Positions 24,313-64,000 of a DNA stretch of 64,000 bases are shown piece after piece. Position numbers and translations under genes: made by a program. Origin of the DNA: Epithemia pelagica (taxonomy: Eukaryota > Protista > Bacillariophyta). The notes under the pieces were generated by a model. The model did no database searches and was not told the origin of the DNA. It was given only the letters and a program-made list of their open reading frames with translations. The stretch is from the NCBI GenBank assembly GCA_946965045.2, contig OX337241.1, positions 2,232,001 to 2,296,000 of the forward strand. The letters run 5' to 3'. Position 1 is the first letter of the stretch. Every line of letters begins with the position of its first letter.

Positions 24313-24980
24313 ATTTGATGGCGATTCGACGTGGTATTAAAGTCGGCGTGAAAGATCAACGAGATCGTTCGACCGAAATGTGAAGCGATTCCGTCGTGAA
24401 GATGATGGACTCAGGACAGATCGCAGGAAGGAAGGGATGAAACAAGACCTTCGTGTTGCCAAATACTCCTATGAACATAGAGTGAAGCTACAAACAGTTC
24501 CAACCTCCTGTCGGGTTTTTCTGGTGTTAGCGAAGGCATGCTCCCAAGCGGTTCAGCTTTCGGTACTCAAATCAAAACAATCCCGTAGAGTGCACTGCCC
24601 TCAAGAGGTGTACGCGTCGTGGATGTGGATGCTGGGGAGCTGTACGATTGGGGGTGGAGGCAGTCTCTCCGTAGTCCGTAGTTCCCGCCAGATAATCAAA
24701 AATACCGGGTAATCCTGGTTTTACAGGATTTCAGTGGAAACCCGGATAATTGCGACACGATATTCAAAAAAATCATCTCTTTCCTGCATAGCAATACGAG
24801 CAGTAGGTGCATATTGTGCGCGCAAGACGACCCCAAAATTTCCAAATGTCGCATCAGAAACCCCCCCTTTACTCTGAAATAAAGTATTGCCTAATTTTTG
24901 TTAAATATAAGAGCCCAAAATTCTCCTTATACGACTCACAATTTTGTGCACGACCCCGACGACCCAAATTTCAATGGAAC

Positions 24981-25045
24981 TGTCATCGAATACTTCAGTG
25001 CAATAGATGAAGAACTGATCTATTGCACTGAAGTATCCGATGACA
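24981..25045. repeat. Subterminal hairpin, 28-bp stem
   Basis: Arms 24981-25008 and 25018-25045 match at 27/28 with a 9-nt loop; 189 bp inside the left terminus. Confidence 0.9.
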
Positions 25046-25374
25046 AATTCATTGAAAATTGACTGAGTTGCAGGCTGCACAAAACCGATCATTGGAATTT
25101 CACTTCATCTCATCGATTTCCCCTCTCTCAGAGCGCGCATAGCGTGCCCAGAGTATAAAATATATACATACACTAAGAGCATATAAATATGTAGTCGCTG
25201 TTTAATCGTCAATTACGTTCACCTGAATGTTCAACTTTATGAAGAACTGCCTCCAAGGTATCGTCTCAATGGCACCTCTGTTACCAAGAACCAGAGCAAC
25301 TACGAGAGCTTTTTTTACATTAGTAGCAGTCCAAGTTCTTATTTGAATTTGTCTGAAGTCAGTGAACGTCTCCC

Positions 25375-28300
25375 ATGCCCCGCCTTACGCAGAAGAAACG
25401 CAGGAGGGCTGCATCGACATCATGCCCACCCAACCGCCGCCCACCAAAACCAAAAGCTCAACGGCTCATTGTTACACCCAGCAAGGAAGAAACGGCATCC
25501 ATACACTCCCACACCGCAGATGATGGTAATCGCGTCGATTCCCCTACCAAGTTGGCCCAACCACAACATGAAGAACCAACCAAACCAACCAGAAAATCGG
25601 CTCGTCTCATCGACGCCGCAAAAGACAAAGAAAAAGCTGAAATACGTGAGTGGGCAAAAGAAAATATGAATCTCCTTCCTTCCCCGAACCAACAGACACG
25701 TCAAAAGAGAGACGAGTCGAACACTCCCTGCGAATCAAACTCTGTAGAACGAGCACGCATAGCCCGAATCATCATGGACTGTAGTGAACTGGAATACGTA
25801 CCATGCTCTGTATATGGACGTGATCGCGAGACAAAGTATCCTGCTCATTTCTTCTGCAGCCGTTGCAAGAAAGCAGATGACGAGGAAACCCCAGGATCTT
25901 CACGCTTCATCAATAGACTGGCCGAAGGTGGCCGATACCGGTGTACAGCCAATCATACAAACTGGTATCGTCCAACACATTTGAACGATAAGTCGAAGCA
26001 TTTGCCTGAAGCTCCTCCATACAGCCTTTTCTGTGTCCCCATTGAAGACCGACCGGTTGCCCCCCCCCTCCAGCCAAAACCATGCAGAAAGAAACAGAAC
26101 CCGAATCACTCGAAGATATCATGTTTGCCGAACAGGAAGATAGTAATCCGCCTGACTATCAAGCCCAGCTTATTCGAGAGACAGTTAATGACATAGAAAA
26201 TATACCTTTTCGTAACCTTTCAGATTGTTCGGAACCCGTTCCTGAAGAAAGCAATGAAGACAACTTGTCAGAAGATTGTTCAGATGATGAAAGCCTTGAT
26301 GACCTACCTCCATGGCCTGATCCTCAAGACGACGAGCTGGACGAACTTGATAGCATAGAACCTCTCGACATCCAAAATGACAACTCGACTGACGACACTG
26401 AACAAATCAATAGTCAACAATCAAGCCAGGCCGGTTTAAGTGACGGCGAAAGACCAAACGAGCCATCCCTTGACGCAATTCTCAGAGCTCACGAAGACAA
26501 GACATCGTCTCTCTCGTCCCAGGTTACTGATCTCCTCAAGACAATAGAGCAATACAAAACAGAATTGGAAGAAACAAGACGGAAACTGAAGAACAAAAAT
26601 GAGGAACTTCGCTATTGGAAACGCAAGGACTTTGAACAAACTGGAGAGAAGTTACCTCGGTCAGCATACTATGCCAAAGATAGAAAGAGACTCGTCGATC
26701 ACATTCGCTATGTCCTTGAGTCGAGAACTCAAAACATGGAAGCGACAAGTCGGGCAGCGGGTGAGTTTTTTCGGGACGTTGCTCAATTGTGCATCGACAA
26801 AACAATCCATAGTGGATTGCTGTTTGAGTCTACTTACAGTGTATTCAGACAGTACGTGCGTGAGTATGTGTTTACGCCGTATAACATACTCAAGAAGATG
26901 GACATCATGGGAGGAAGATTAAACTTCAGCGGAATAGAAGTCTTACGTTCAGTAGAAAACAACGGCATTGCCCATGCAAGAACACTTCTCCCAAGCACCT
27001 CTGCCCTACAAGAATACGCCAATGCGGTTGAAAAATTTGGCAGCTACTTATGTCCATACAAACTAATGCGAAACAAGAACGATGGCTCTGAGGGGTTCAC
27101 GTTTTGGGCCGCGGATGTTATGGCAACGATGCTCCTAGCTAGTAGTTGTCTGCATGGAGACGCAAGGTGGCGACCAATCCGCCTGGCACAGAGTCTTGAC
27201 GGTGCGTTATTCACCAAAAACTTAAGCCATACCTTGGGTGGGTTGAAGTTCAACGACCCTACTCATCCATTGGCACAGTCAAGGAATGGTGTTTTTCCAA
27301 TTGTATGTGTTTGCCGTCCGGAGAGTAAAGGCTTGGTTCCTTCCGTTTTCAGGAATATGATCCATGAGGTCCGTGAAGCGGCAATGACTGTAGTTCCCAC
27401 GAAATTTGGAGTGTGGCCATTACGCATATGTACTAATTGTGACATGTCTTGCAAATGGAAACTCCTTGGGAGAGGAGGAGCAGCCCAGCAAGCCAAATTT
27501 CCCTGCTCAAAATGCGCTGTACAAAGTGGTCGGTTGCACTTGCCCAAGATCGAAGACGAACCGTCCTGTACTCTGTGTAAGCACTTGGGTCATCACGAAA
27601 GGACTAATTGGAAGTGTTATCACCATACCATGTGTACGAAAACCCATCTTTCTACATTGGAGAACGAAATGAGACAGTTTCAAAAAGATATGCCCATCAT
27701 CCAGAAGAATCTGAACCGGATCGAAACTAACGATGAAGATTGACCCTCGGAACGTTCCTTCGGAGCAACAAAGGACGGATCTTCAATGCATCCATTTCGA
27801 CTTGGCGAAGGCATCTCAACCCCAGCGACAAGAATACGCACGTAGCCTGACAAATGACCTGTTCGTCCGGAAGCTGGACCTGCGTGGTTCGATTGAAGAA
27901 CGCCAACATCGATTGAAGTCCTCGCACGTCAGAGAGTGGGAGTATTACCAATCCAAAAAGCTAATCGACGACTTCAAGGGTTCAATGCATTCGACAGCAC
28001 TGGTTTACCTACTGGATACTGTCCCATGTATCCTACATATGGAGAATAGGATGGGTCTCAAAATACTGACCATGTGTTTAAGGAAAGGACTGCAGAGTGC
28101 TACGAACAAGGAACTGTCTCATGTTTTGGAAGCTCTACCGAAGGACAAACGTAACAATGTCACGGATCGATGCAACAAGTTCATTCAGATGGTCAATGAG
28201 GCAATGTCTCATCACCTGTTGGGTTCCATCGACTTCCCCACGCACTGGAAGGTACCGTACAAGGAGTCTAAACGAGAGATCAGTCCGATCACGATGGACA

Positions 28301-29152
28301 ACGTCCGTATCCGTAAACTCATCCCCAAGTTTGATAAATTAATCAACATCTGCATCTCTTCAGAGGAAGACAGACGCACATGGTCCAAGTGTGTGGACAA
28401 TTATCAACAGTCCATGCTGATTCTCAGGCAGAAAGGTGACTTGACTGATGAAGAAATCAAGAACTACCAACGCTTTGCCGACTTTTTCTTCGCAGACTGG
28501 GTGAAACTCAATGGTGAGCATGGAGTAACAAACTACGCTCACCTGATAGGTAGCGGCCATGTGCATGAGTACTTGTTGCATTGGAAAAACTTGTCATCCC
28601 ATGCACAGCAGGGGTGGGAAGGTAAATTGGTTGGTGTGAGGTCGTGAACCCTCTTGTCTAGAATCCTTTGTTTCTTGATTCCTCACCCTCCTTTCAGCTT
28701 TTAACTTGCTCTTTAAAACTTTCTATTTCCATAGGACCCAAAGGGGTGGAAGTGTCAACAAGGGGAAAGGGCGACAGACTTGTCTAGAACCAATGGCACG
28801 ATGGCTCCAACGACGTATGGTGTTCCTAAGTGGCTATTCGTGGAAAGCTATTACGGAGGGTAACAAGCGGAACAACTGTAGTATTAGGTCCAGTCGGAAG
28901 AACTGGGTGATTGACAATGGAGGGACAATGGAGTTCTGCCAAAGGGTTGCAGCATGTGCTTTGGACGAAACAGATTTGGAGGATGATGCTGAACTCGGTG
29001 AATGGGAATTCTATGATCCAGGGACTGTTCCTTCGACAGAGGGAACGATTGTTCACGGATCAACATTGTTCGAGGATTATTATGACGAGGAGGATGATGA
29101 TGATGAGGTAGACGAGGTTGGTGAGGAAACTATAGTAGTAGGAAACTCATAA
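25375..29152 (+). pseudogene. RAG1/Transib-like DDE transposase, two frameshifts
   Basis: ORFs 25375..26196, 26082..27743, 27733..28647 and 28706..29152 are collinear with the 1068-aa ORF at 59705..62911. Motifs: QSLDGA, TNCDMSC...FPCSKC, PCILHMENR, TNYAHLIGSGH, AQQGWE. Frameshifts near 26060 (poly-C) and ~27730; intron 28622-28697. Confidence 0.85.
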
Positions 29153-29199
29153 AGAATGAAAGTTGGTCGCAAACTACGATTACTAATAAAAGGGAATGA

Positions 29200-30732
29200 T
29201 TAGGCAAAGCTTTGAATGTCATTCCAGAGATCAACGGCATCAACACGTGCCCATTTCCACTGGTTTTCCATAGACTCAGTGGTTTTGAATGCAGCACCAG
29301 CGACACAGCTGCAATCGAAGTGAGTTTCTCCATTGTCGTCGTAAATATCTTTAACCTCCATCACGGACTCGTCGTTGTGGAGAAAGTGCGCTCCCACTTT
29401 GATCTTGGAGATGGCATATTCCATCGTCGTCGTATCAAGGGTCGACTCTTCGTCATCCGTGTCGCTTTCCGATTCCGAAGTGAACATTGGCGCCACAGAA
29501 GCGCTGCCTTGGAGTAGCCGTGTCAGATTGGGACAAGGCGGCTTCGTCTCCAATCGACCATCATTCTTCAAGGAATACACGTATCGCTGGTAACCGACGG
29601 TCAACCTGACGTTATACGGTGAGAAGGTGAAGTCGACACGTGGCTCCATGGTACGTCTCTTGAATGGACGCTGTGGAGCATCGTCTTCGTTTTCTTTGTT
29701 TTCCTCGGAAGAAGACTCAACCACGGCCATGTTGAATCCTGCAGTAAGAGGGACGCCGTCTTTACCATCGGCCAAAGTAGGTCGCCTTTCGGAAAAACCA
29801 TACGTCGATCCTGGTCCAAGGATCAACCGGAGAATGTCGAGTTCTCGTGGCGTCTTGAACCGAATAACTCCAGCGTTGAATGAAATTTTCACCTTGGACC
29901 GACGAAGTGTCTGGTCCAAGTGCAAAAAAGAATCAGAAAGGGTAATAGTGTGAGAAGGGACAGTTGCAAGGTAATTCGAAATCAACGAAATGTACTGGAT
30001 TGTCTCCAAAGGAACATGACCGACGTTTAAGCTGACAACCTCTTTGTCGTTCGACTGGCCACTTTGTTTATTAAGACACTTGTTGAGTGCCTTCTTCAAA
30101 GCATACAAACCGTTCCACAAGGACTCGTGTAAACAGCGTTGAGGGACGACGCTTCTGGTTGACTTCTTGTAATCTGGGTGGTCGTTGGGGAAGCCGAGGG
30201 CAGCAATCGAAGGTAGAGGAACCAAGGACTTGATTTTGCGGCAAGAACGATGTTCGTAATCGATCATCTCCCACGTGCGAACAACAAACACATTATGCAA
30301 ACCAATGGCCCAAGCGTTCTTAGATAGGGAAAATTCGTCAACAGTGAAAACGAAGGCGGGGAAAAGAATCTTTGGGTTGTCATTTTTGTTCGAGGTCGAA
30401 ATCCACAAACGATCCGATGATTCGTAGAGCTCAGCTTGTTGGGCACCTGGGCCTGAGAATATAGGTGCGAATGAATGTTTGGGTGGTTTTGGTTTCTTAC
30501 ACTCGATTTTATTCCGGTTGAAAAGTGGATGGAACAGACGGAGACGGATGGTGGTCTCGTACTCGTCGGGGTTGTCGTCATCTATATCGATCTGTCGACA
30601 TTCAAGACGGGCGACGTGTTCTTTCCCTTCGTGCTTGATGACGACAAAGGACCCCATACGAAGCGAGTCCTTTAGGAATCGATCATAGTGGGGGTCCTGG
30701 TTCAGACACACAGTCTTCTCATAGGTAGACAT
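29200..30732 (-). CDS. Transposon partner protein (BAH-like N-terminus, acidic hinge, small C-terminal beta domain)
   Basis: Intact 510-aa ORF convergent on the transposase. Clearly homologous to 57529..59169 (LR.GSFV.I, ELYESS, PAFVF, GSTYG...PTLADG, IK.G..F). Confidence 0.8.
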   Translation of the reverse strand: MSTYEKTVCLNQDPHYDRFLKDSLRMGSFVVIKHEGKEHVARLECRQIDIDDDNPDEYETTIRLRLFHPLFNRNKIECKKPKPPKHSFAPIFSGPGAQQAELYESSDRLWISTSNKNDNPKILFPAFVFTVDEFSLSKNAWAIGLHNVFVVRTWEMIDYEHRSCRKIKSLVPLPSIAALGFPNDHPDYKKSTRSVVPQRCLHESLWNGLYALKKALNKCLNKQSGQSNDKEVVSLNVGHVPLETIQYISLISNYLATVPSHTITLSDSFLHLDQTLRRSKVKISFNAGVIRFKTPRELDILRLILGPGSTYGFSERRPTLADGKDGVPLTAGFNMAVVESSSEENKENEDDAPQRPFKRRTMEPRVDFTFSPYNVRLTVGYQRYVYSLKNDGRLETKPPCPNLTRLLQGSASVAPMFTSESESDTDDEESTLDTTTMEYAISKIKVGAHFLHNDESVMEVKDIYDDNGETHFDCSCVAGAAFKTTESMENQWKWARVDAVDLWNDIQSFA

Positions 30733-31396
30733 GGTCGTCCTCTTCTCTCTTCATTCAATGAGTCGTTCTTGTCAAAGATGGCACCTCTAGAGTGATTGTC
30801 GGTGGGAATCCAATGAAGGGAAATTCCATTACCGGTCAAGAAGAATGGGTGTCGGTATGACATTTTACTTATTGTTGCCTTTGTCTTGGTGGCAATGACA
30901 TTTAAGGACAAATTTGCGCGCGGGGTTAGAAAATGGTGCGCGGGCATGGAAATTGGGAGTTCCAGGCACGCGTTGCCAGGAAAAACCAAGCACCTACTGC
31001 TCGTATTGGTCGTACAGCACGCCCCCAGAACAGTCGGTGACATCCATACAACTCGATTTTTTCAACCCCCCCCCCATGTTTTTTCCTTCTAGCCCCGTTT
31101 ATTTGTTTTGTACGTTAATTGACCGGTATCCCTTTTTTTCACGATCACCCGAGTCTGCAAATTTTTATTCCAAACTTTTCTTTCCCGTTACGCCAGCAAT
31201 GTGGCAAGCGTTCTTGCCTCTGCCAGAATTTACCGGGGGGTCTGTTTTCGCTATTGTAAAATAGCTGTTCTGGGGGGGAGAAAATTTTGGAGTTTCTATG
31301 GTTCCACCCCGACCTTAGGCTATCTCCACCCGGGGCCGCTAAAGGTCCAAAAACCGCTATCGAACTCCACCATCTCCTCTAACCGCTAAACAGCTC

Positions 31397-56975: not shown

Positions 56976-57528
56976 TGTTTCAGTTCCCTTGAAAACGAAA
57001 ACAAAACTCTCCTGGTTGTCAGCACTGAGTCCTCATCATGAATCACGACAGTCATAATCATACCTGTACCAAAACAAAGAGGAGTCGCTCAAAAACTCCC
57101 TCGCGTGTACCCCTCTATTTTTTATAGAACGCTTATACAGTATAACGACTCTCTAACTGCTTTTAGTCGCCGACGTTCACAACTCTCGCTCCCACGACCG
57201 ACTTTGCTCTTGCTCATAAACAATACATATGACCACATACCATAAGCTTTATCATAACACACCTAAATAATCGACACTAATTTGGTCTTTATAACAATAC
57301 CAGCTAACGGTGTTAACGGTTTCCCGTGTACACGTGCCTCCAGGGCCAAGTTTCGCGCCTGCCCTCACCAAAATGCCGACTGGCGACCTTAAACATAAAA
57401 TATAGGATCCGAATCCGACTTTCATTTTGTTAAGAAATAAATGTCCTTTCTGTCGCAACACCATCCACATTCACCTCATCAATTCTTGCCAAAAGCTCAC
57501 TCGGAAGCCAACATCCAATGGAGAACTA

Positions 57529-59169
57529 ATGACAAACGACCCAAATGCAGACGATCAAGATGGTTGTTTGACACAACAATCAAGCACAACTCCTTTGATT
57601 CAGATTGACAACTACAAAAGACGTTCTTTGTATCCTGAATCCACCATGTTTCGGAGTGTACCGGACATCAATAAGCCGCCTTTCTACGTAAAGAGACTCG
57701 ACGATCACCTCCGCATCGGGTCGTTTGTCCACATCCATCTTCCCGGACAGAAAGACGATACGACGATCGCACGCATCCACTCTGGAATCAATGCCACCGG
57801 CCTCAGGTTTGTGTTGTTCCCTCCTTTGTTTCCCCGCTACAATCTAAATGACCAGTCTCACCCCAAACTGCCCAAGCACAATTACACCAGGGTGATGCTG
57901 GGCCTTGGTTCACGAAACACGGAACTGTACGAATCGTCCACTACATTTGACGTCGTAGAAGATGCCTCCTCCGTTATTTCCCACCCGGCTTTTGTATTTT
58001 CCCTACATGAATTCAAGTCTCCCAAGAACATTTGGACTGAAGGCCTTGACAATTTCTTCTTTGTTCGTTTCCGGATGCCCATCATTGACAGTGATCCTCC
58101 GGTTGGTTGTCTACATCCATTAGAGGAGAAGACAAAGCTTTGCTTTCCGAACGAGCACGCTTGTCGTTTCATTGTGGATAAGGCAGTTCCTCCCCCAAGA
58201 TGCTTTCACCAGTCATCTTTTGTTGGCCTATTCCTTCTTCGCAAGGCTCTCGTGAAATTGTTGAACAAATCTTCGGGTCAGGCCGAGGAACACGAAGTGA
58301 CTGGCGATACCATTGGCCTTGTACCTACAGAAACCTGGACCTATATTGTCCAGCTTTGTCGAATCCAAGGCATAGACATCCATACAACCAAGGGTTCTGC
58401 GTCCTATCTCGATATCGACCCCAAGTTCACCAGGAAGAAAGTCAAGATTAGCTACCCTACCACCATTATTCGGTTTCGGAGTTCTGACGACCTCCAGTTC
58501 TTACGAGGCTTGCTTGGATTCGGCAGTACTTATGGATGTACCGATCGCAAACCCACTCTTGCCGACGGTCCCAATGGAACTTCCTTCAAGCCCGAGCACC
58601 GTGTGACACTTGTGAAGGGATCTACATCCGAGGAAAAAGAAAATTTCAAGGTCAGATCTCGTGACCAGCAAGTTGACCTTTGTTGGTCCGACTTTCATTG
58701 TCGCGTTGTAGTGGGATACGAGCAGTATCAGTACTCCCTTGACCACAAGGGAAAGCTCAAGAATGACCCTCCCACTGAGGACCTCAAGAACATTCTCCAA
58801 GGAACACCAACATCATCTGACGATAAGACTGACACGACCGATGTCTACCAACATGAACCTTCCGACACCACCGAGAGTGATTCCGAGCCCTCTAAAGCAC
58901 CAAGCCCTGCTTCACCTAACAAAATTGCCAAGTCGACTGCCCAAGACTCCCCCAGTAGCCGTATCAAGATCGGCCACCAGTTCACTGACTGGGACGAGCA
59001 AAACGTGTATGAGGTCATAGCAGTCAACCGTAACGAGAATGGCCCGTTTGTTGTGTCTCGTATTATCGGCGGAGTGTTCTACGACCACGACCTCCCCATG
59101 GATCAACAAGAGATTCATAAATGGGAAGATGCTGACGAGGTTCTTCTCCTAATTCGTCAGTTCAACTAG
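57529..59169 (+). CDS. Transposon partner protein (paralog of 29200..30732)
   Basis: Intact ORF with likely ATG at 57529; shares all blocks with the copy-1 partner. Confidence 0.8.
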   Translation: MTNDPNADDQDGCLTQQSSTTPLIQIDNYKRRSLYPESTMFRSVPDINKPPFYVKRLDDHLRIGSFVHIHLPGQKDDTTIARIHSGINATGLRFVLFPPLFPRYNLNDQSHPKLPKHNYTRVMLGLGSRNTELYESSTTFDVVEDASSVISHPAFVFSLHEFKSPKNIWTEGLDNFFFVRFRMPIIDSDPPVGCLHPLEEKTKLCFPNEHACRFIVDKAVPPPRCFHQSSFVGLFLLRKALVKLLNKSSGQAEEHEVTGDTIGLVPTETWTYIVQLCRIQGIDIHTTKGSASYLDIDPKFTRKKVKISYPTTIIRFRSSDDLQFLRGLLGFGSTYGCTDRKPTLADGPNGTSFKPEHRVTLVKGSTSEEKENFKVRSRDQQVDLCWSDFHCRVVVGYEQYQYSLDHKGKLKNDPPTEDLKNILQGTPTSSDDKTDTTDVYQHEPSDTTESDSEPSKAPSPASPNKIAKSTAQDSPSSRIKIGHQFTDWDEQNVYEVIAVNRNENGPFVVSRIIGGVFYDHDLPMDQQEIHKWEDADEVLLLIRQFN

Positions 59170-59481
59170 TTTGCAATAAGATATATAAGAATTTAGTGTT
59201 GATCCATCAAGTGCTTCTCATTACTCATTATTTAGATTCTCCAGATCATCATTCTGATCCAACATACGCAACAGGTCCACAGTTCTGAGACTTGCTTCTT
59301 CCGGAACTTGTCCGGAAGATTGTTGCGGCGATTTCTGTTTCGGAGGGAGACCAACTTCCCAGTCATCGACCACTGCCCCCTCCAAGTCCTCCAGTCAAAT
59401 TGGTCCGTCCTTGTTTGACAAGCCATACTCCAGTGTCCCCCCATTGTCACGAATCCATTCATCGAAGTTTTCTATCTCATC

Positions 59482-62400
59482 TTACGACCGATCCAGTTGT
59501 TGTTTTATCTCTTCCTCAGTGGTTCCAATGAGGAACACCATTCGGCGCTGCAACCATCGAGCCATTGACCGCAACCTACTCTTCTCCGCCGTTCCCCGAT
59601 TCCCCGCGCCTCCTCTCTGTGTCCGAGAGAAGTAGAACCTTTTAAACAAACTGTTAAAGGCTATAACACATAGGAGGTCAGCCGTCAGTTGATGGAGCCC
59701 TCAGTCAAATACACAGTTGTGGATTGAACTTACCTTCCCAGCCTTGTTGACTATGCAACCATAAGTTACGCCAATGCAATAGATATTCCATGCAATGGCC
59801 ACTACCCAGCATATGGGCGTAGTTTGTTATCCCCTCGACTCCATACAATGAGCACCAATCTCTGTAGAAGTAGTCGATGTCTTTCTGAAAAGCAAAGATC
59901 TCACTGTCCGACATTTCATGTCGCACGTTCACTTTCTTCAGACCCTCCCTGAAATAGTAGATTGCAGACTTAAAGAGGGCGGCCTTCTCGTTATCCACAA
60001 AGCAACAATCAATCAACAGCTCAAATTTGATGAGGAGCTTCCGAATCCTCACGTTATCCATTGTAATGTCTCCAATCTTGCAAGTTTTGGTGTCGTATGG
60101 CACTGTCCATTGGGTTGGTTGGTCCTCTGATCCAAGAATTGTTGAATTCATAATGCCATTGACCTTGCTGACGAATGCAACACATCGGTCTTCCTTTGTT
60201 GTTGTTGTAGGAGGCATCCACTCCAATTCAACGCCGTCCTTTGGATTGATCGCGTTGTTCATCCCCGTCTTTAGCACCATGGTCAGAAACTTGATCCCCA
60301 TTCGATTCTCGAGATGGAGCAAGCATGGAATGGCGTCCATCATAAGCACGATGGCAATACGCTTCTGGGAGGCCTTGGCATTGTCCAGACATTCCAATGC
60401 TCTTTTGTAGGACCATTCCTTGACTCTCTGATTCTTTAATCGTTCCTGTCGTTCCTCCAACGATCCTGTCATTTGGAGTCGACGCAACCTCAAATCTGAA
60501 GTGACCAGTCGAGAATACTCCTGCCTCTGCTCCTGTGTCGCCCGGTTCAAGTCAAATTGGATCGAAAGGATATCGTTGGCTTGCATCTCCGTTGCAACAA
60601 TATTGGGATCATCTTGCATCGACAGTTCGCTATGCTCCTCAAGCAAAGCAAGGTCTTTAGCGATTAGAGGCAGGGGACCATTACGGAAGTCGTCGACCTC
60701 TTTCTTCAAGGTTGCAGTATGCTCCTCAGTGAGCATCTTTACATGGCGGCAAATCCAAGTTGGGTCGTGATGATGATCCAATTGAGTACAGGTCTTGCAC
60801 TTGTCTGGTTTTATCCCCGATGGTTGGCATAGCTGTCCACTGTGAATGGCGCATTTAGAACAGGGATAAGTATGCTGCTTGGCGGCACCCCCTCGTCCAC
60901 TGAGTTCCCAATCACATTTCATATCACAATTGAAGCAGAGTGTGGGTTTCTTTATCTTGTGTGCCTTGGATACAACTCCAACGGCTTCCTTGATTTCTTC
61001 CAAGGTTCTTGCAAAAACTCCAACCACGTTCTCAGTCGTTTCTGGCATTGCCACACATCCAACGGGAAAGACTGATTGTTGTGACTGCGCATATGGGTTG
61101 GATGGATCGTTGAATTTGATACCAACCAAGGTGTGGGACAAATTCTTAGTAAATTGTGCGCCATCAAGACTGGCAGCGATTCGTATCGACCTCACCACGG
61201 CCTCGGAGTTTAGAAGATGACCAGCCTTCAGAAGACAAAGGAGTACATCGGCTGCACGAAAAGCAAAACCTTCGGTGCCATTTTTCGAGCTTGTCTTCAT
61301 GATGAAGGGACAGATGTTGCGTCCAAAGCTTTCTACCAAAGCAGCGTAGGCTTTCATACAACCAGAACTAGGAAGAAGCGTCTTCTCTCTAGGAACACCA
61401 TCTGTCTCTACGGAACGCAGTAGTTCGATACCTTCGTAGTTCAGTACACCCCCCCGAAGATCCATTTGTTTCAGTACACGGTGGGGGGTATAGATATTCT
61501 GCCTTACATAGTCTCGAAAGACTGAGTAAGAACATTGCTTGAGTTGCCCTTCGTGGACGCTCTCGTCGAGACACAACTCTGCGACTTGGCCGTAGAAATA
61601 CTTCAAAGCACGACTATTACTACTCCGGATGTTCTTAGTTGCATCTTCAATGACACTCCTGATATGTTGTACGAGGGTGTCTGCCTGGTCATTCGATGTG
61701 ACACAGGTGGGTAGGCGACGACTTTGGCATGTAGCACAATTTCGTTCGAGTTCTTCTATCTTCTTCTTAGCATCTCGCAGCTTGTCTGATTCGTTGCGAA
61801 GCTTCTTTGTTTGAGTCTCTACTTGTTCTTCCGATTTTCTAAGACGTTCTTTCAACAGTCTCACTTCTTCCTGTAGTGATAACTCAGAAAGGTTGATTGA
61901 CGGGTTCAATGGTTGTATGGGCACTGGCATATCTACAGAAGAATCAACGGCCATTGTAACAGTATTGTCTTGTTCAACAGGTGCTTCAGACTCGCTTGAT
62001 TCCGAATCATTTAACTGATTTCCTTGACTTTCTATGGGAGTAGAAGCTTCTTCTTGTTCAGGTGGGCCTGTTCCATCATCGACCAATTGTTCTTGAGGTT
62101 CTGTTTGCTCTACAGACGAGATTGTACGGTTGTTTTCAACGTCATCTTCATCATCCTCTTCTTCAATGTCGGAGAGAGTAGCACTAGGTCCCATAACAGG
62201 AGGTTGAAATCGACTTGTAGGTATGGGCTGGGGGTCATTTCGCCTCCTCTGCCGTCGATCTTGTCGTCGTTTCTTCTTGTTGATTCTTGGGGGTGGACCA
62301 TCAGGATATCTACGGGCCGTTGGTTTAACTAAATTACGGTGCTTGGCAATACATGTATAGGGACCCTTTTTCCTCTTCCGATTTACCTTGAGCTTTTCGC

Positions 62401-62911
62401 CAGACTTTTCATCCCAGTCAGCGTTGTCACATTGACCACAGAAGAAAAAATCTTCATCCTCCCATTCTTTCAAACGGTTAGATCCGAAAACAGAGCAGGG
62501 GACCCAGTCTTCATTCTTGAAGTCTTCGATGATCTTGTGGATGCGGCGGAGCTCGAAAACAGTGTCTTCAACGGGTGCATTATCTTCTTGGCGTTGGCTT
62601 CTTGTTCGTTTGTTTGGAGATGCCGCAGAGGCAGGAGGTGGAGGACCGCCTCCTCTCTTTCTCGAGCCACGAGAGGGCTGTCTCTGCGAACGACGTTGTG
62701 GTTGTAAGGGAGTTTTAGCTGGTTTCTTCTTGTTCTTTGTGACTTTCGTTGAGGTGGAACTGATTGGATCACCAGTATTTTCTTTGTTGGCAGAGGTGCT
62801 GCAATTCTCTCGCAATGATGAGGGTAGAAATAGGTCGTTGCTTAGGGGGCAACAGGCGCAGGGATCCATGGTTCCTGTTTCGTTTGCTTGGTGAGAAGAG
62901 CATGCAGACAT
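59482..62911 (-). CDS. RAG1/Transib-like DDE transposase (2 exons; stops only in the C-terminal tail)
   Basis: AASLDGA, FNCDMKC...YPCSKC, DAIPCLLHLENR and ITNYAHMLGSGH...SQQGWE, then intron 59661-59733, then AFNSLFKRFYFSRTQRGG. TAA at 59482-59484; homology to copy 1 continues past it. Confidence 0.85.
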
Positions 62912-63175
62912 TGTTGTTTGTTGTCTCTCGGGGATAGGGATGTAATCCTTATAATGGTATCGAAATCAAGTCAAACGCAGTTGGACGAGATGGTTGGTTT
63001 TTGGAAAATTGGATGAGACTAATGTGCGATTAACATAGATTTACTGTAGTGGTATTAATGTTAGTGTTAGTGCGTCGGCTGAAGTTCCATAGGCCGCTCA
63101 TTTTTTGGTGGGTACCATCCGACGAAAAAAGGGGCTGTTCTTTTAGGAGCCAAATTTGGGAACCTATTGGATGTC

Positions 63176-63250
63176 TGAGAGCGAGACCAACGGCGGGGAA
63201 TGTTGCTTGGATGACCATTGGATCATTTCCGACCGTTGGTCTCGCTCTCA
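63176..63250. repeat. Subterminal hairpin, perfect 18-bp stem
   Basis: TGAGAGCGAGACCAACGG (63176-63193) pairs with CCGTTGGTCTCGCTCTCA (63233-63250); 187 bp inside the right terminus. Confidence 0.9.
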
Positions 63251-64000
63251 GGGGTCCAATTGATCCGTTGAAACGGGTCCAAGCTAGGGGCTACCCTAAA
63301 TCTCCAAAATTTTGGCTGATGGTAGTTTTTCATTTAACAAAAGGGCTTCTCACTATTTGTGTCATAGTAAATGAAGGCGCTTCTGGCCACGTCTCGGCAA
63401 GGCCGGCTACGACCGTTTACACCGTTAGCTGGTATTGATCGCCATGCCATCGGTTTCTTTCCGTTAGGCCTACTGTTTCGTTCATATATTGCTTGCTCTT
63501 CTGACTTCTCATCCAATCCCAACAGCGACCAACGATTGAAAAACTGGGACCTTTCATCAGTCATGGCTGGAGTAACGTTCTCGAACCACCATGGCACGCC
63601 AGCAATAAATTCAAAGTGGCAGTTCGATAACTATATCGATCTACCCACACTGTCCTCTTGAGATCATCCCTATTCGTAGCCGCCTTTTCGACTAACATGT
63701 CTCTACCCATTTGTTACCGTCATCTATTACATCCTTCTTTCCTGCTAAACTTTTGGTAATCTGCTCGCTTTCTTGCTTCGATTTTTTTCACCACATACAA
63801 CATTCAACAATCATCTTCTCCTCCAACCCCGTATGCTCACGCTAACAACCACTTTTCTCCTCCTGCTTCCAACTTTTCCATACGTAGCCTTCATCTAACC
63901 AACAATCTTTTCATCCCATCCTACTAGACGCAATAAAAACAATACCTAATGCATGTTCGTCCGATGCTGTTGATCATCGTAAAAGTTGCCTATGTAATCA

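Follow-up and report, generated by a model that had tools for sequence, protein, structure and literature searches.

A two-gene transposon family in Epithemia pelagica

The genome of the diatom Epithemia pelagica contains a family of two-gene transposons, two copies of which lie in the 64,000-nt stretch analysed here (contig OX337241.1, positions 2,232,001 to 2,296,000 of the forward strand; hereafter the window). Inverted-repeat searches delimited copy 1 (57295-63437, 6143 bp) and copy 2 (24792-31008, 6217 bp), each consisting of a terminal inverted repeat (TIR), a transposase gene, a convergent partner gene and a second TIR. It is highly probable, in our assessment, that these 6.1-6.2 kb elements are cut-and-paste DNA transposons in which a DDE transposase with the domain order of RAG1 and Transib is encoded together with a convergent BAH/Tudor-like partner protein. 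Both copies, with the same anatomy, had been proposed in a sequence-only reading of the window, and the inverted-repeat and open reading frame (ORF) searches recovered them. That reading, in which the element was a RAG1-like, ProtoRAG-style transposon new for its occurrence outside animals, was partly supported: the anatomy and the fold were right, the RAG2-like partner was wrong, and both the specificity of the link to RAG1 and the novelty outside animals were overstated.

The transposase has a RAG1/Transib fold

For structure prediction we used residues 305-1015, the core of P0008, a family protein whose C-terminus is complete and which is 45% identical to the core of the window protein, together with an alignment of 47 sequences. 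The AlphaFold model had a mean predicted local distance difference test score (pLDDT) of 89.3 and a predicted template modelling score of 0.85. When this model was compared with the PDB using Foldseek, the first 49 matches were all RAG1, amphioxus BbRAGL or HzTransib (E 5e-10 to 3e-3), and the next fold in the list, ISCth4, followed at E 0.047. Similar results were obtained with VIA-align, in which the RAG1/Transib-type matches spanned 411-466 residues and gave Z scores of 21.8 for HzTransib (6pqx; 411/480 residues, 4.1 Å), 21.7 for RAG1 (model residues 66-704 on RAG1 460-1005) and 20.2 for BbRAGL, against 12.8 for the P element transposase, 9.0 for ISCth4 and 7.8 for Hermes. The RAG1/Transib fold anticipated by the sequence-only reading thus extends over the whole core, and the comparison that it had suggested with RAG1, HzTransib and ProtoRAG structures did not return another superfamily among the best PDB matches.

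The model contains an RNase H fold in which one invariant aspartate lies on strand 1, the next just past strand 4 and the glutamate on a late helix. The second aspartate is followed, in this order, by C-x2-C, a long helical insertion domain, H-x5-H, the glutamate and a C-terminal domain. In the numbering of P0001, the transposase ORF of copy 1, the columns D569, D588, C670, C673, C691, C694, C707, H709, C849, H852, H1019, H1025 and E1045 are invariant in the family and D649 is nearly invariant; all of the transposase motifs that had been picked out in the window (D569, D649, C670, C673, C849/H852, H1019, H1025 and E1045) are therefore among the conserved columns. The pair C670-x2-C673 lies about 21 residues past the second aspartate, and H1019-x5-H1025 lies 20-26 residues before the glutamate; the two aspartates, the glutamate and the C(2)C and H(5)H residues are located where the secondary structure would lead one to expect them. 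The residues compared in RAG1 are D600, D708 and E962, C727/C730 and H937/H942. We take the two arrangements to be the same, in the sense of colinearity rather than of confirmed residue-by-residue equivalence.

The convergent partner carries a BAH domain

The partner gene of copy 1 occupies 57646-59169 on the plus strand (507 aa, intact), its start being placed at the ATG at 57646 (MFRS) because homologues and the 507-aa partner of a sibling copy at another locus, L085, fix it there. The partner gene of copy 2 (29200-30732, minus strand) is also intact and encodes 510 aa, 35-36% identical to the partner of copy 1. Only eight close homologues were found, and a profile search of a word-indexed protein database gave no further ones. 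Additional partners were obtained from the ORFs of 80 metagenome loci, scanned with a local hidden Markov model built on nine partners, and a homologue was detected in 59 fetched loci. When the count was restricted to metagenome loci in which 1.4 kb or more of sequence followed the transposase match, the partner was present in 46 of 48, on the opposite strand whenever present, and its stop codon was located a median of 148 nt past the end of the transposase match. A convergent partner was likewise found in every genome locus examined that had enough downstream sequence. The two-component convergent layout proposed for the window is thus conserved across the family, and a partner that so strictly accompanies its transposase presumably has a required function.

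No Pfam match was obtained for the partner at E ≤ 1, PF01426 (BAH) included. Its fold was recognised in an AlphaFold model of the window's own partner (P0069, residues 45-546; 49-sequence alignment; pLDDT 87.6), which consists of a BAH domain (residues 4 to about 190, identified by Foldseek and VIA matches), an unmatched domain of mixed alpha/beta structure (residues about 182-380), a disordered acidic linker (residues 386-427) and a small barrel (residues 428-502) with a weak likeness to Tudor, chromo, SAWADEE, PWWP and KOW domains (Z about 5). The top 18 and nearly all of the top 50 Foldseek matches in the PDB were BAH domains or BAH-containing proteins (E down to 5.6e-5), including SHL, EBS, BAHCC1, DIM2, polybromo, ORC1 and Sir3. 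A wide VIA search gave Z 10.8 to the BAH domain of ORC1b (model residues 4-155), all of its top 19 matches being BAH domains or BAH-containing proteins, and the ESM Atlas matches of the partner carry PF01426. Neither a Kelch propeller nor a PHD finger was matched by the partner model in the structure searches. The partner is therefore not RAG2-like, and 'ProtoRAG-style', as the element had been called, describes its convergent gene layout only.

Because both recognisable modules of the partner belong to classes of domain that recognise histone marks or nucleosomes, we infer a role in chromatin. This role is most plausibly the tethering of the transposase to chromatin or its licensing there. 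The partner would then be needed as a non-catalytic subunit, linking the transposase to nucleosomes that bear a particular mark, and, if the tethering role holds, would be a functional analogue of RAG2 but not its relative.

The elements are mobile and duplicate a single base pair

Each element in the window is flanked by the same single base on both sides, A at 57294 and 63438 for copy 1 and G at 24791 and 31009 for copy 2. Identical bases were also found on the left and right of the copies at seven other loci, G/G at L001 and L088, C/C at L002, L085, L087 and L089, and T/T at L090, so that the flanking base matched in 9/9 copies of the genome assembly with both ends (chance probability about 4e-6). 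The sequence-only reading had seen no target site duplication (TSD). In public contigs of the same organism from runs X1-X3, position 57294 was joined straight to TCGCCATGCC..., the sequence with which the right flank goes on after its first A; this empty-site continuation extends over 227 nt in run X3. The filled junction and the junction of the L085 copy were present in runs X1-X3 too. The empty allele with one A and the filled allele in the form A-element-A directly demonstrate a 1-bp TSD and an insertion polymorphism. The sibling of copy 1 at L085:3433-9567, in the same assembly, is 99.1% identical to it over 6.1 kb and has different flanks. The family has moved recently in this genome.

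A 5-bp TSD and other multi-base TSDs (2-9 bp), with or without an offset, were rejected, none being present in the copies; the isolated flank repeats that were observed consist of one 7-mer in both flanks of L016 and one 5-mer in L002. A target context of the form ATA-R/R-TCG was also discarded, as it was not common to the seven other genome copies. Two loci were without a usable TIR pair: in L004 the left end could not be located, and L086 is truncated at a contig end. In the literature searched we found no report of a DNA transposon with a 1-bp TSD. The transposase would nick the DNA at the CA ends of the element and transfer these ends to the target with a 1-nt stagger, and in excision the flanking DNA would probably form hairpins, as it does in RAG, Transib and hAT.

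In one run X2 contig, 58214-59726 and 59749-62157 of the window are missing; it could represent an internally deleted derivative copy, with a joint that is unreliable since its anchors measure only 21-23 nt. Copia-type reverse transcriptase genes (RVT_2) were located 0.3-0.6 kb from two other copies (L001:11864-15258 and L002:1066-4926), which suggests transposon-rich surroundings of the elements. In a metagenome copy the left flank (L037:115-154) is a tandem 10-mer, ACCTGTAGAC, of at least four units, and this copy was therefore inserted in or beside a microsatellite-like array.

Structure of the transposase gene and state of the copies

In both elements the transposase is about 1,100 aa long and its gene has one short intron. 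Copy 1 contains a minus-strand ORF of 1068 codons and the convergent plus-strand ORF of the partner, and copy 2 is the mirror arrangement. Exon 1 of copy 1 (59734-62869, minus strand), in which P0001 starts at 62869 and an in-frame ATG lies further upstream at 62911, includes on that strand the catalytic codons of D569 (61165-61163), D649 (60925-60923) and E1045 (59737-59735) as well as the C(2)C (60862-60851) and H(5)H (59815-59795) motifs. The frame ends a few codons past SQQGWE. Removal of a 73-nt GT-AG intron (59661-59733, minus strand), which begins one base past the catalytic glutamate codon (window 59733-59737), joins it to ...AFNSLFKRFYFSRTQRGG... and gives SQQGWE/AFNSLFKRF; the last of the motifs listed for the transposase in the sequence-only reading spans this joint and requires the removal of the intron. 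The splice is well supported because the joined sequence is contiguous in intronless relatives and because the intron is kept in copy 2, at the homologous position (28622-28697, plus strand, 76 nt, GT-AG). Retention of the intron would append nine residues and a stop, with loss of the conserved C-terminal domain. By analogy with P-element splicing, such retention could serve as a regulatory switch.

Exon 2 of copy 1 (59221-59660, minus strand) encodes the C-terminal domain and an acidic tail, and its frame is broken by a TAA codon at 59484-59482 and a TGA codon at 59397-59395, both premature and on the minus strand. Comparison with the sibling L085, which is open to its natural stop, showed that these are C-to-T nonsense changes (CAA to TAA and CGA to TGA). 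Copy 1 is thus nearly intact, with two stop codons in the C-terminal tail. In copy 2, exon 1 (25375-28621, plus strand) is split into three ORFs by at least one 1-nt frameshift, near 27715-27735 in a conserved block, and by a second break near 26082-26196, while exon 2 (28698-29152, plus strand) is open through the acidic tail. With its transposase frameshifted, copy 2 could therefore be mobile only with enzyme supplied by another copy.

N-terminal to the catalytic core, the transposase contains a conserved Cys/His region with the pattern CS..G..R.....G.FFC..C...D......Y.C.A.H.....PT (window 62290-62560; P0001 residues about 104-195), followed by an acidic low-complexity stretch and then by a coiled coil. 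The Cys/His region is probably a zinc-binding module for DNA recognition. Between the second aspartate and the glutamate, the insertion domain includes a SAP-like motif, ...DLRLRRLQMTGSLEERQERL... (window 60180-60270; P0001 residues about 795-825). The family profile gave weak matches to the SAP domains of MKL1 and E1B-55kDa-associated protein 5 (E 1.8-2.9), and one AlphaFold DB neighbour is annotated as SAP-domain-containing.

Termini and subterminal sequences

The TIR at the partner-gene end of copy 1 (57295-57320) reads CAATACCAGC... and is 26 nt long, with 96% complementarity to the TIR at the transposase end (63412-63437). In copy 2 the TIRs at the transposase end (24792-24810) and the partner-gene end (30990-31008) are 19 nt long and 100% complementary. 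All four ends open with CAATAC[C/G]AGC; the exact 10-mer occurs nowhere else in the window, and an exact search for it detected no non-autonomous copies within the window. The elements of the window thus have the form 5'-CAATAC...GTATTG-3'. The sequence CAATAC[C/G] or CAATAG was present at the ends of the 14 elements with both ends identified, all of which have CA..TG termini. The boundary of copy 1 is exact, because the flanks of its 99%-identical sibling L085 differ from 57295 outward, and the CAATAC boundary in general is exact because copies of the same subfamily diverge directly outside it.

Copy 1 contains an imperfect palindrome with 37-nt arms at 63166-63260, that is 177-271 bp inside the transposase end and upstream of the transposase ATG, and copy 2 contains one with 44-nt arms (89%) at 24965-25061. 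Palindromes about 90-270 bp inside the transposase-proximal end and upstream of the start codon were also observed at L001:5648-5724 and L003:300-412. The arms measure 37-44 nt in 3/4 of these elements, and in L001 detection was limited to a 16-nt core. The palindrome, conserved among the four in position and not in sequence, may be a regulatory or binding site. A second feature, a conserved motif of approximately GCATATTGTGCGCGCA[A/G]G[A/G]CGA, follows the TIR directly and solely at the transposase-proximal end (window 24811-24832; L002:5468-5487; L087:3465-3484; L088:3443-3462; L090:3449-3468). It spans five subfamilies whose elements share merely about 65% DNA identity, and is absent from the subfamily of copy 1, L001 and L085. 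Since this motif is confined to one end, the two ends of the element are functionally asymmetric.

Size and spread of the family

A search of the word-indexed protein database gave 68 close-to-moderate homologues of the transposase, none of them named or with an informative Pfam domain. An exhaustive HMMER search with the core profile matched 5,116 representatives of 50%-identity clusters at E ≤ 1e-3, of which 839 reached E ≤ 1e-30, and the best 150 of the 5,116 matches were all in-family. Among JGI metagenome contigs, at least 456 contain a gene for a relative of the transposase. The assembly from which the window derives (ENA ERZ21939226) itself holds many subfamilies, with protein identities of 40-61%. 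Thousands of clusters without a Pfam match indicate that the family is probably unclassified in algal and metagenome annotation; it is too distant from every catalogued lineage to be detected by Pfam. In the literature, with Repbase and Dfam outside the search, we found no description of a two-gene element with a BAH partner or of this family in diatoms, in agreement with the suggestion of the sequence-only reading that it was undescribed.

Placement of the family and alternative explanations

The transposase can be placed with confidence in the CACTA-Mirage-Chapaev-Transib (CMCT) clade, whose members have the C(2)C and H(3-4)H motifs in common, as well as CA..TG termini (Kojima 2025, PMC12730594). 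Within the clade we place the family, tentatively, nearer Transib/RAG1 than CACTA. A RAG1-like fold alone gives no placement on the RAG1/Transib branch; in the earlier assignment to that branch the fold stood but its specificity did not, since the motifs are clade-wide (PMC12730594) and predicted CACTA structures match the model about as well as those of Transib. In the ESM Atlas shape search, Transposase_21 (CACTA) models gave template modelling (TM) scores of 0.55/0.50 and an arthropod Transib cluster 0.52/0.52, the best matches being unnamed clusters from Mucoromycota and rotifers (TM 0.58-0.60); the picture in the AlphaFold DB was similar, with RAG1 itself at rank 22. No CACTA-type transposase was present among the PDB matches, so that RAG1 and Transib are apparently the sole solved structures of the clade, and the link to RAG1 is less specific than the PDB list would suggest.

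The family may be a deep branch on the CACTA/Mirage/Chapaev side for which RAG1 tops the PDB list as the sole solved structure of the clade, an explanation that we consider rather unlikely. It is favoured by the TM scores of the Transposase_21 models, by the occurrence of a two-gene organisation in CACTA elements and by the short TSD, which is nearer the 2-4 bp of CACTA-Mirage-Chapaev elements than the canonical 5 bp of Transib. HHpred is also reported to point to RAG1 for a further lineage of the clade outside Transib (Kojima 2025, PMC12730594). The comparison of language-model features, however, ranked RAG1 clusters first (0.95-0.96), above unnamed and DUF1280 clusters (0.91), Transposase_21 (0.85) and Plavaka (0.80). 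No Transposase_21 match was obtained at E ≤ 10 and the termini are not CACTA. The length of the TSD also varies within Transib, being 5, 3 or 2 bp (2026 preprint), which makes a 5-bp TSD a weaker criterion for Transib.

The remaining alternatives concern the second gene and the nature of the locus. The partner could be a captured host gene carried as a passenger with no role in transposition, since host genes and chromatin-reader domains are known to be taken up by DNA transposons and the function of the partner is deduced rather than observed. We regard this as improbable, because the partner is convergent and colinear in nearly all informative loci even though their transposases are just 24-35% identical to the query core, because the partners have diverged in step, to 15-20% identity, yet are open, and because the partner of copy 2 is intact although the transposase beside it is broken. 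That the two proteins are domesticated host genes rather than parts of a mobile element has next to no probability: nothing more than the long open reading frames speaks for it, and the exact TIRs, the many diverged copies in one assembly and the 99.1% identical pair at two loci speak against it, the empty allele in public reads refuting it.

Several observations weigh against a two-gene RAG1/Transib-type transposon with a 1-bp TSD and a working partner. Searches of Pfam with both proteins of both copies, and with 37 family cores at E ≤ 10, gave noise only, with no match to RAG1, and neither phmmer nor, at E ≤ 10, the family profile found a RAG1/Transib chain in the PDB. The first family profile was swamped by coiled-coil matches in the PDB, and the core-only profile gave a weak zinc-ribbon match in addition to the two weak SAP matches. 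The modelled transposase is that of the 45%-identical relative P0008 rather than the window's own protein, and structure, as modelled, fails to separate Transib from CACTA. Splicing of the transposase is predicted from the gene sequence, the three public runs obtained in a search for RNA evidence being of unrecorded type and DNA-like in appearance, and we infer the function of the partner, its need for transposition and the hairpin chemistry. Finally, the flanking bases agreed in only 1/5 of the short-read metagenome contigs; we suspect that this disagreement is due to chimeric flanks in short-read assemblies of repeats.

A two-gene transposon with a RAG1/Transib-order transposase and a BAH/Tudor-like partner remains our preferred explanation. 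A further-reaching proposal, to which we give somewhat less than an even chance, is that the family constitutes an undescribed RAG1/Transib-type lineage of superfamily rank, widespread in aquatic protists, the transposase of which needs a BAH and Tudor-like reader subunit. If this were true, the combination of a catalytic RAG1-like subunit and a chromatin-reading partner would have arisen at least twice independently, and strand transfer would occur with a 1-nt stagger, for which we found no report in any eukaryotic cut-and-paste transposon. The 1-bp TSD shows that active sites of this fold can differ in spacing far beyond the canonical 5 bp. Since one copy or more appears to be intact and to have moved recently, the question of whether a reader protein directs or licenses transposition becomes experimentally approachable.

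Comparison with known transposons

The CMCT clade comprises EnSpm/CACTA, Mirage, Chapaev and Transib as well as Plavaka, ESTA and Lanisha, with TSDs of 2-5 bp (Kojima 2025, PMC12730594). The defining motifs and the CA..TG termini of the clade are found in the Epithemia family, with an H(5)H spacing one residue beyond that given for the clade and a 1-bp TSD just outside its range. A BAH partner has been reported for none of these lineages; accessory genes occur in several, for example TET/JBP in fungal lineages and TnpA in CACTA. The likeness to EnSpm/CACTA is one of fold alone (TM 0.55): there is no match to PF02992 (Transposase_21), the ends are not CACTA and there is no 3-bp TSD. The Plavaka Pfam model gave no match in the transposase family.

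With Transib (HzTransib, 6pqx) the family shares the whole-core fold, the DDE triad, a C(2)C motif after the second aspartate and CA ends, and a histidine pair precedes the glutamate in both, with a spacing of 5 residues here and 3-4 in Transib. The two have no detectable sequence similarity. Transib elements contain one gene instead of two, have a 5-bp instead of a 1-bp TSD and end in CAC..., resembling the heptamer of recombination signal sequences, whereas the ends here are CAATAC, with CA alone in common. The transposase of this family additionally contains the N-terminal Cys/His region, the coiled coil and the SAP-like motif.

In ProtoRAG from amphioxus (6b40), as here, a RAG1-fold transposase and a second, convergent gene are located between TIRs. 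RAG-like transposons differ from this family in their 5-bp TSD and in their heptamer/nonamer-like CAC TIRs, which are not present here, and RAG1 Pfam models do not detect its transposase. The partner of ProtoRAG and of AanRAGL is a Kelch propeller with or without a PHD finger, in contrast to the BAH domain and Tudor-like barrel described above. AanRAGL, from the pelagophyte Aureococcus, is an active RAG1L and RAG2L transposon whose TIRs open with CAC... and whose TSDs measure 5 bp; Transib-like proteins occur in ctenophores as well as in bacteria, fungi and plants (Tao et al. 2022, PMC9435367). Since AanRAGL resides in a stramenopile, a RAG-type element outside animals, which had been put forward as the novelty of the window, is not new.

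Like RAG2, the partner is encoded next to the catalytic protein as a second subunit and contains a module of chromatin-reader type, but the folds of the two are unrelated and there is no homology between them. In RAG2 it is the PHD finger that reads H3K4me3. The capture of chromatin-reader domains by transposons is already known, mostly for chromo and PHD domains. The textbook case of a transposase domesticated as an immune recombinase is RAG1-RAG2; the family described here adds a second and independent case, from a unicellular alga, in which a reader-type protein is paired with a RAG1-fold transposase.

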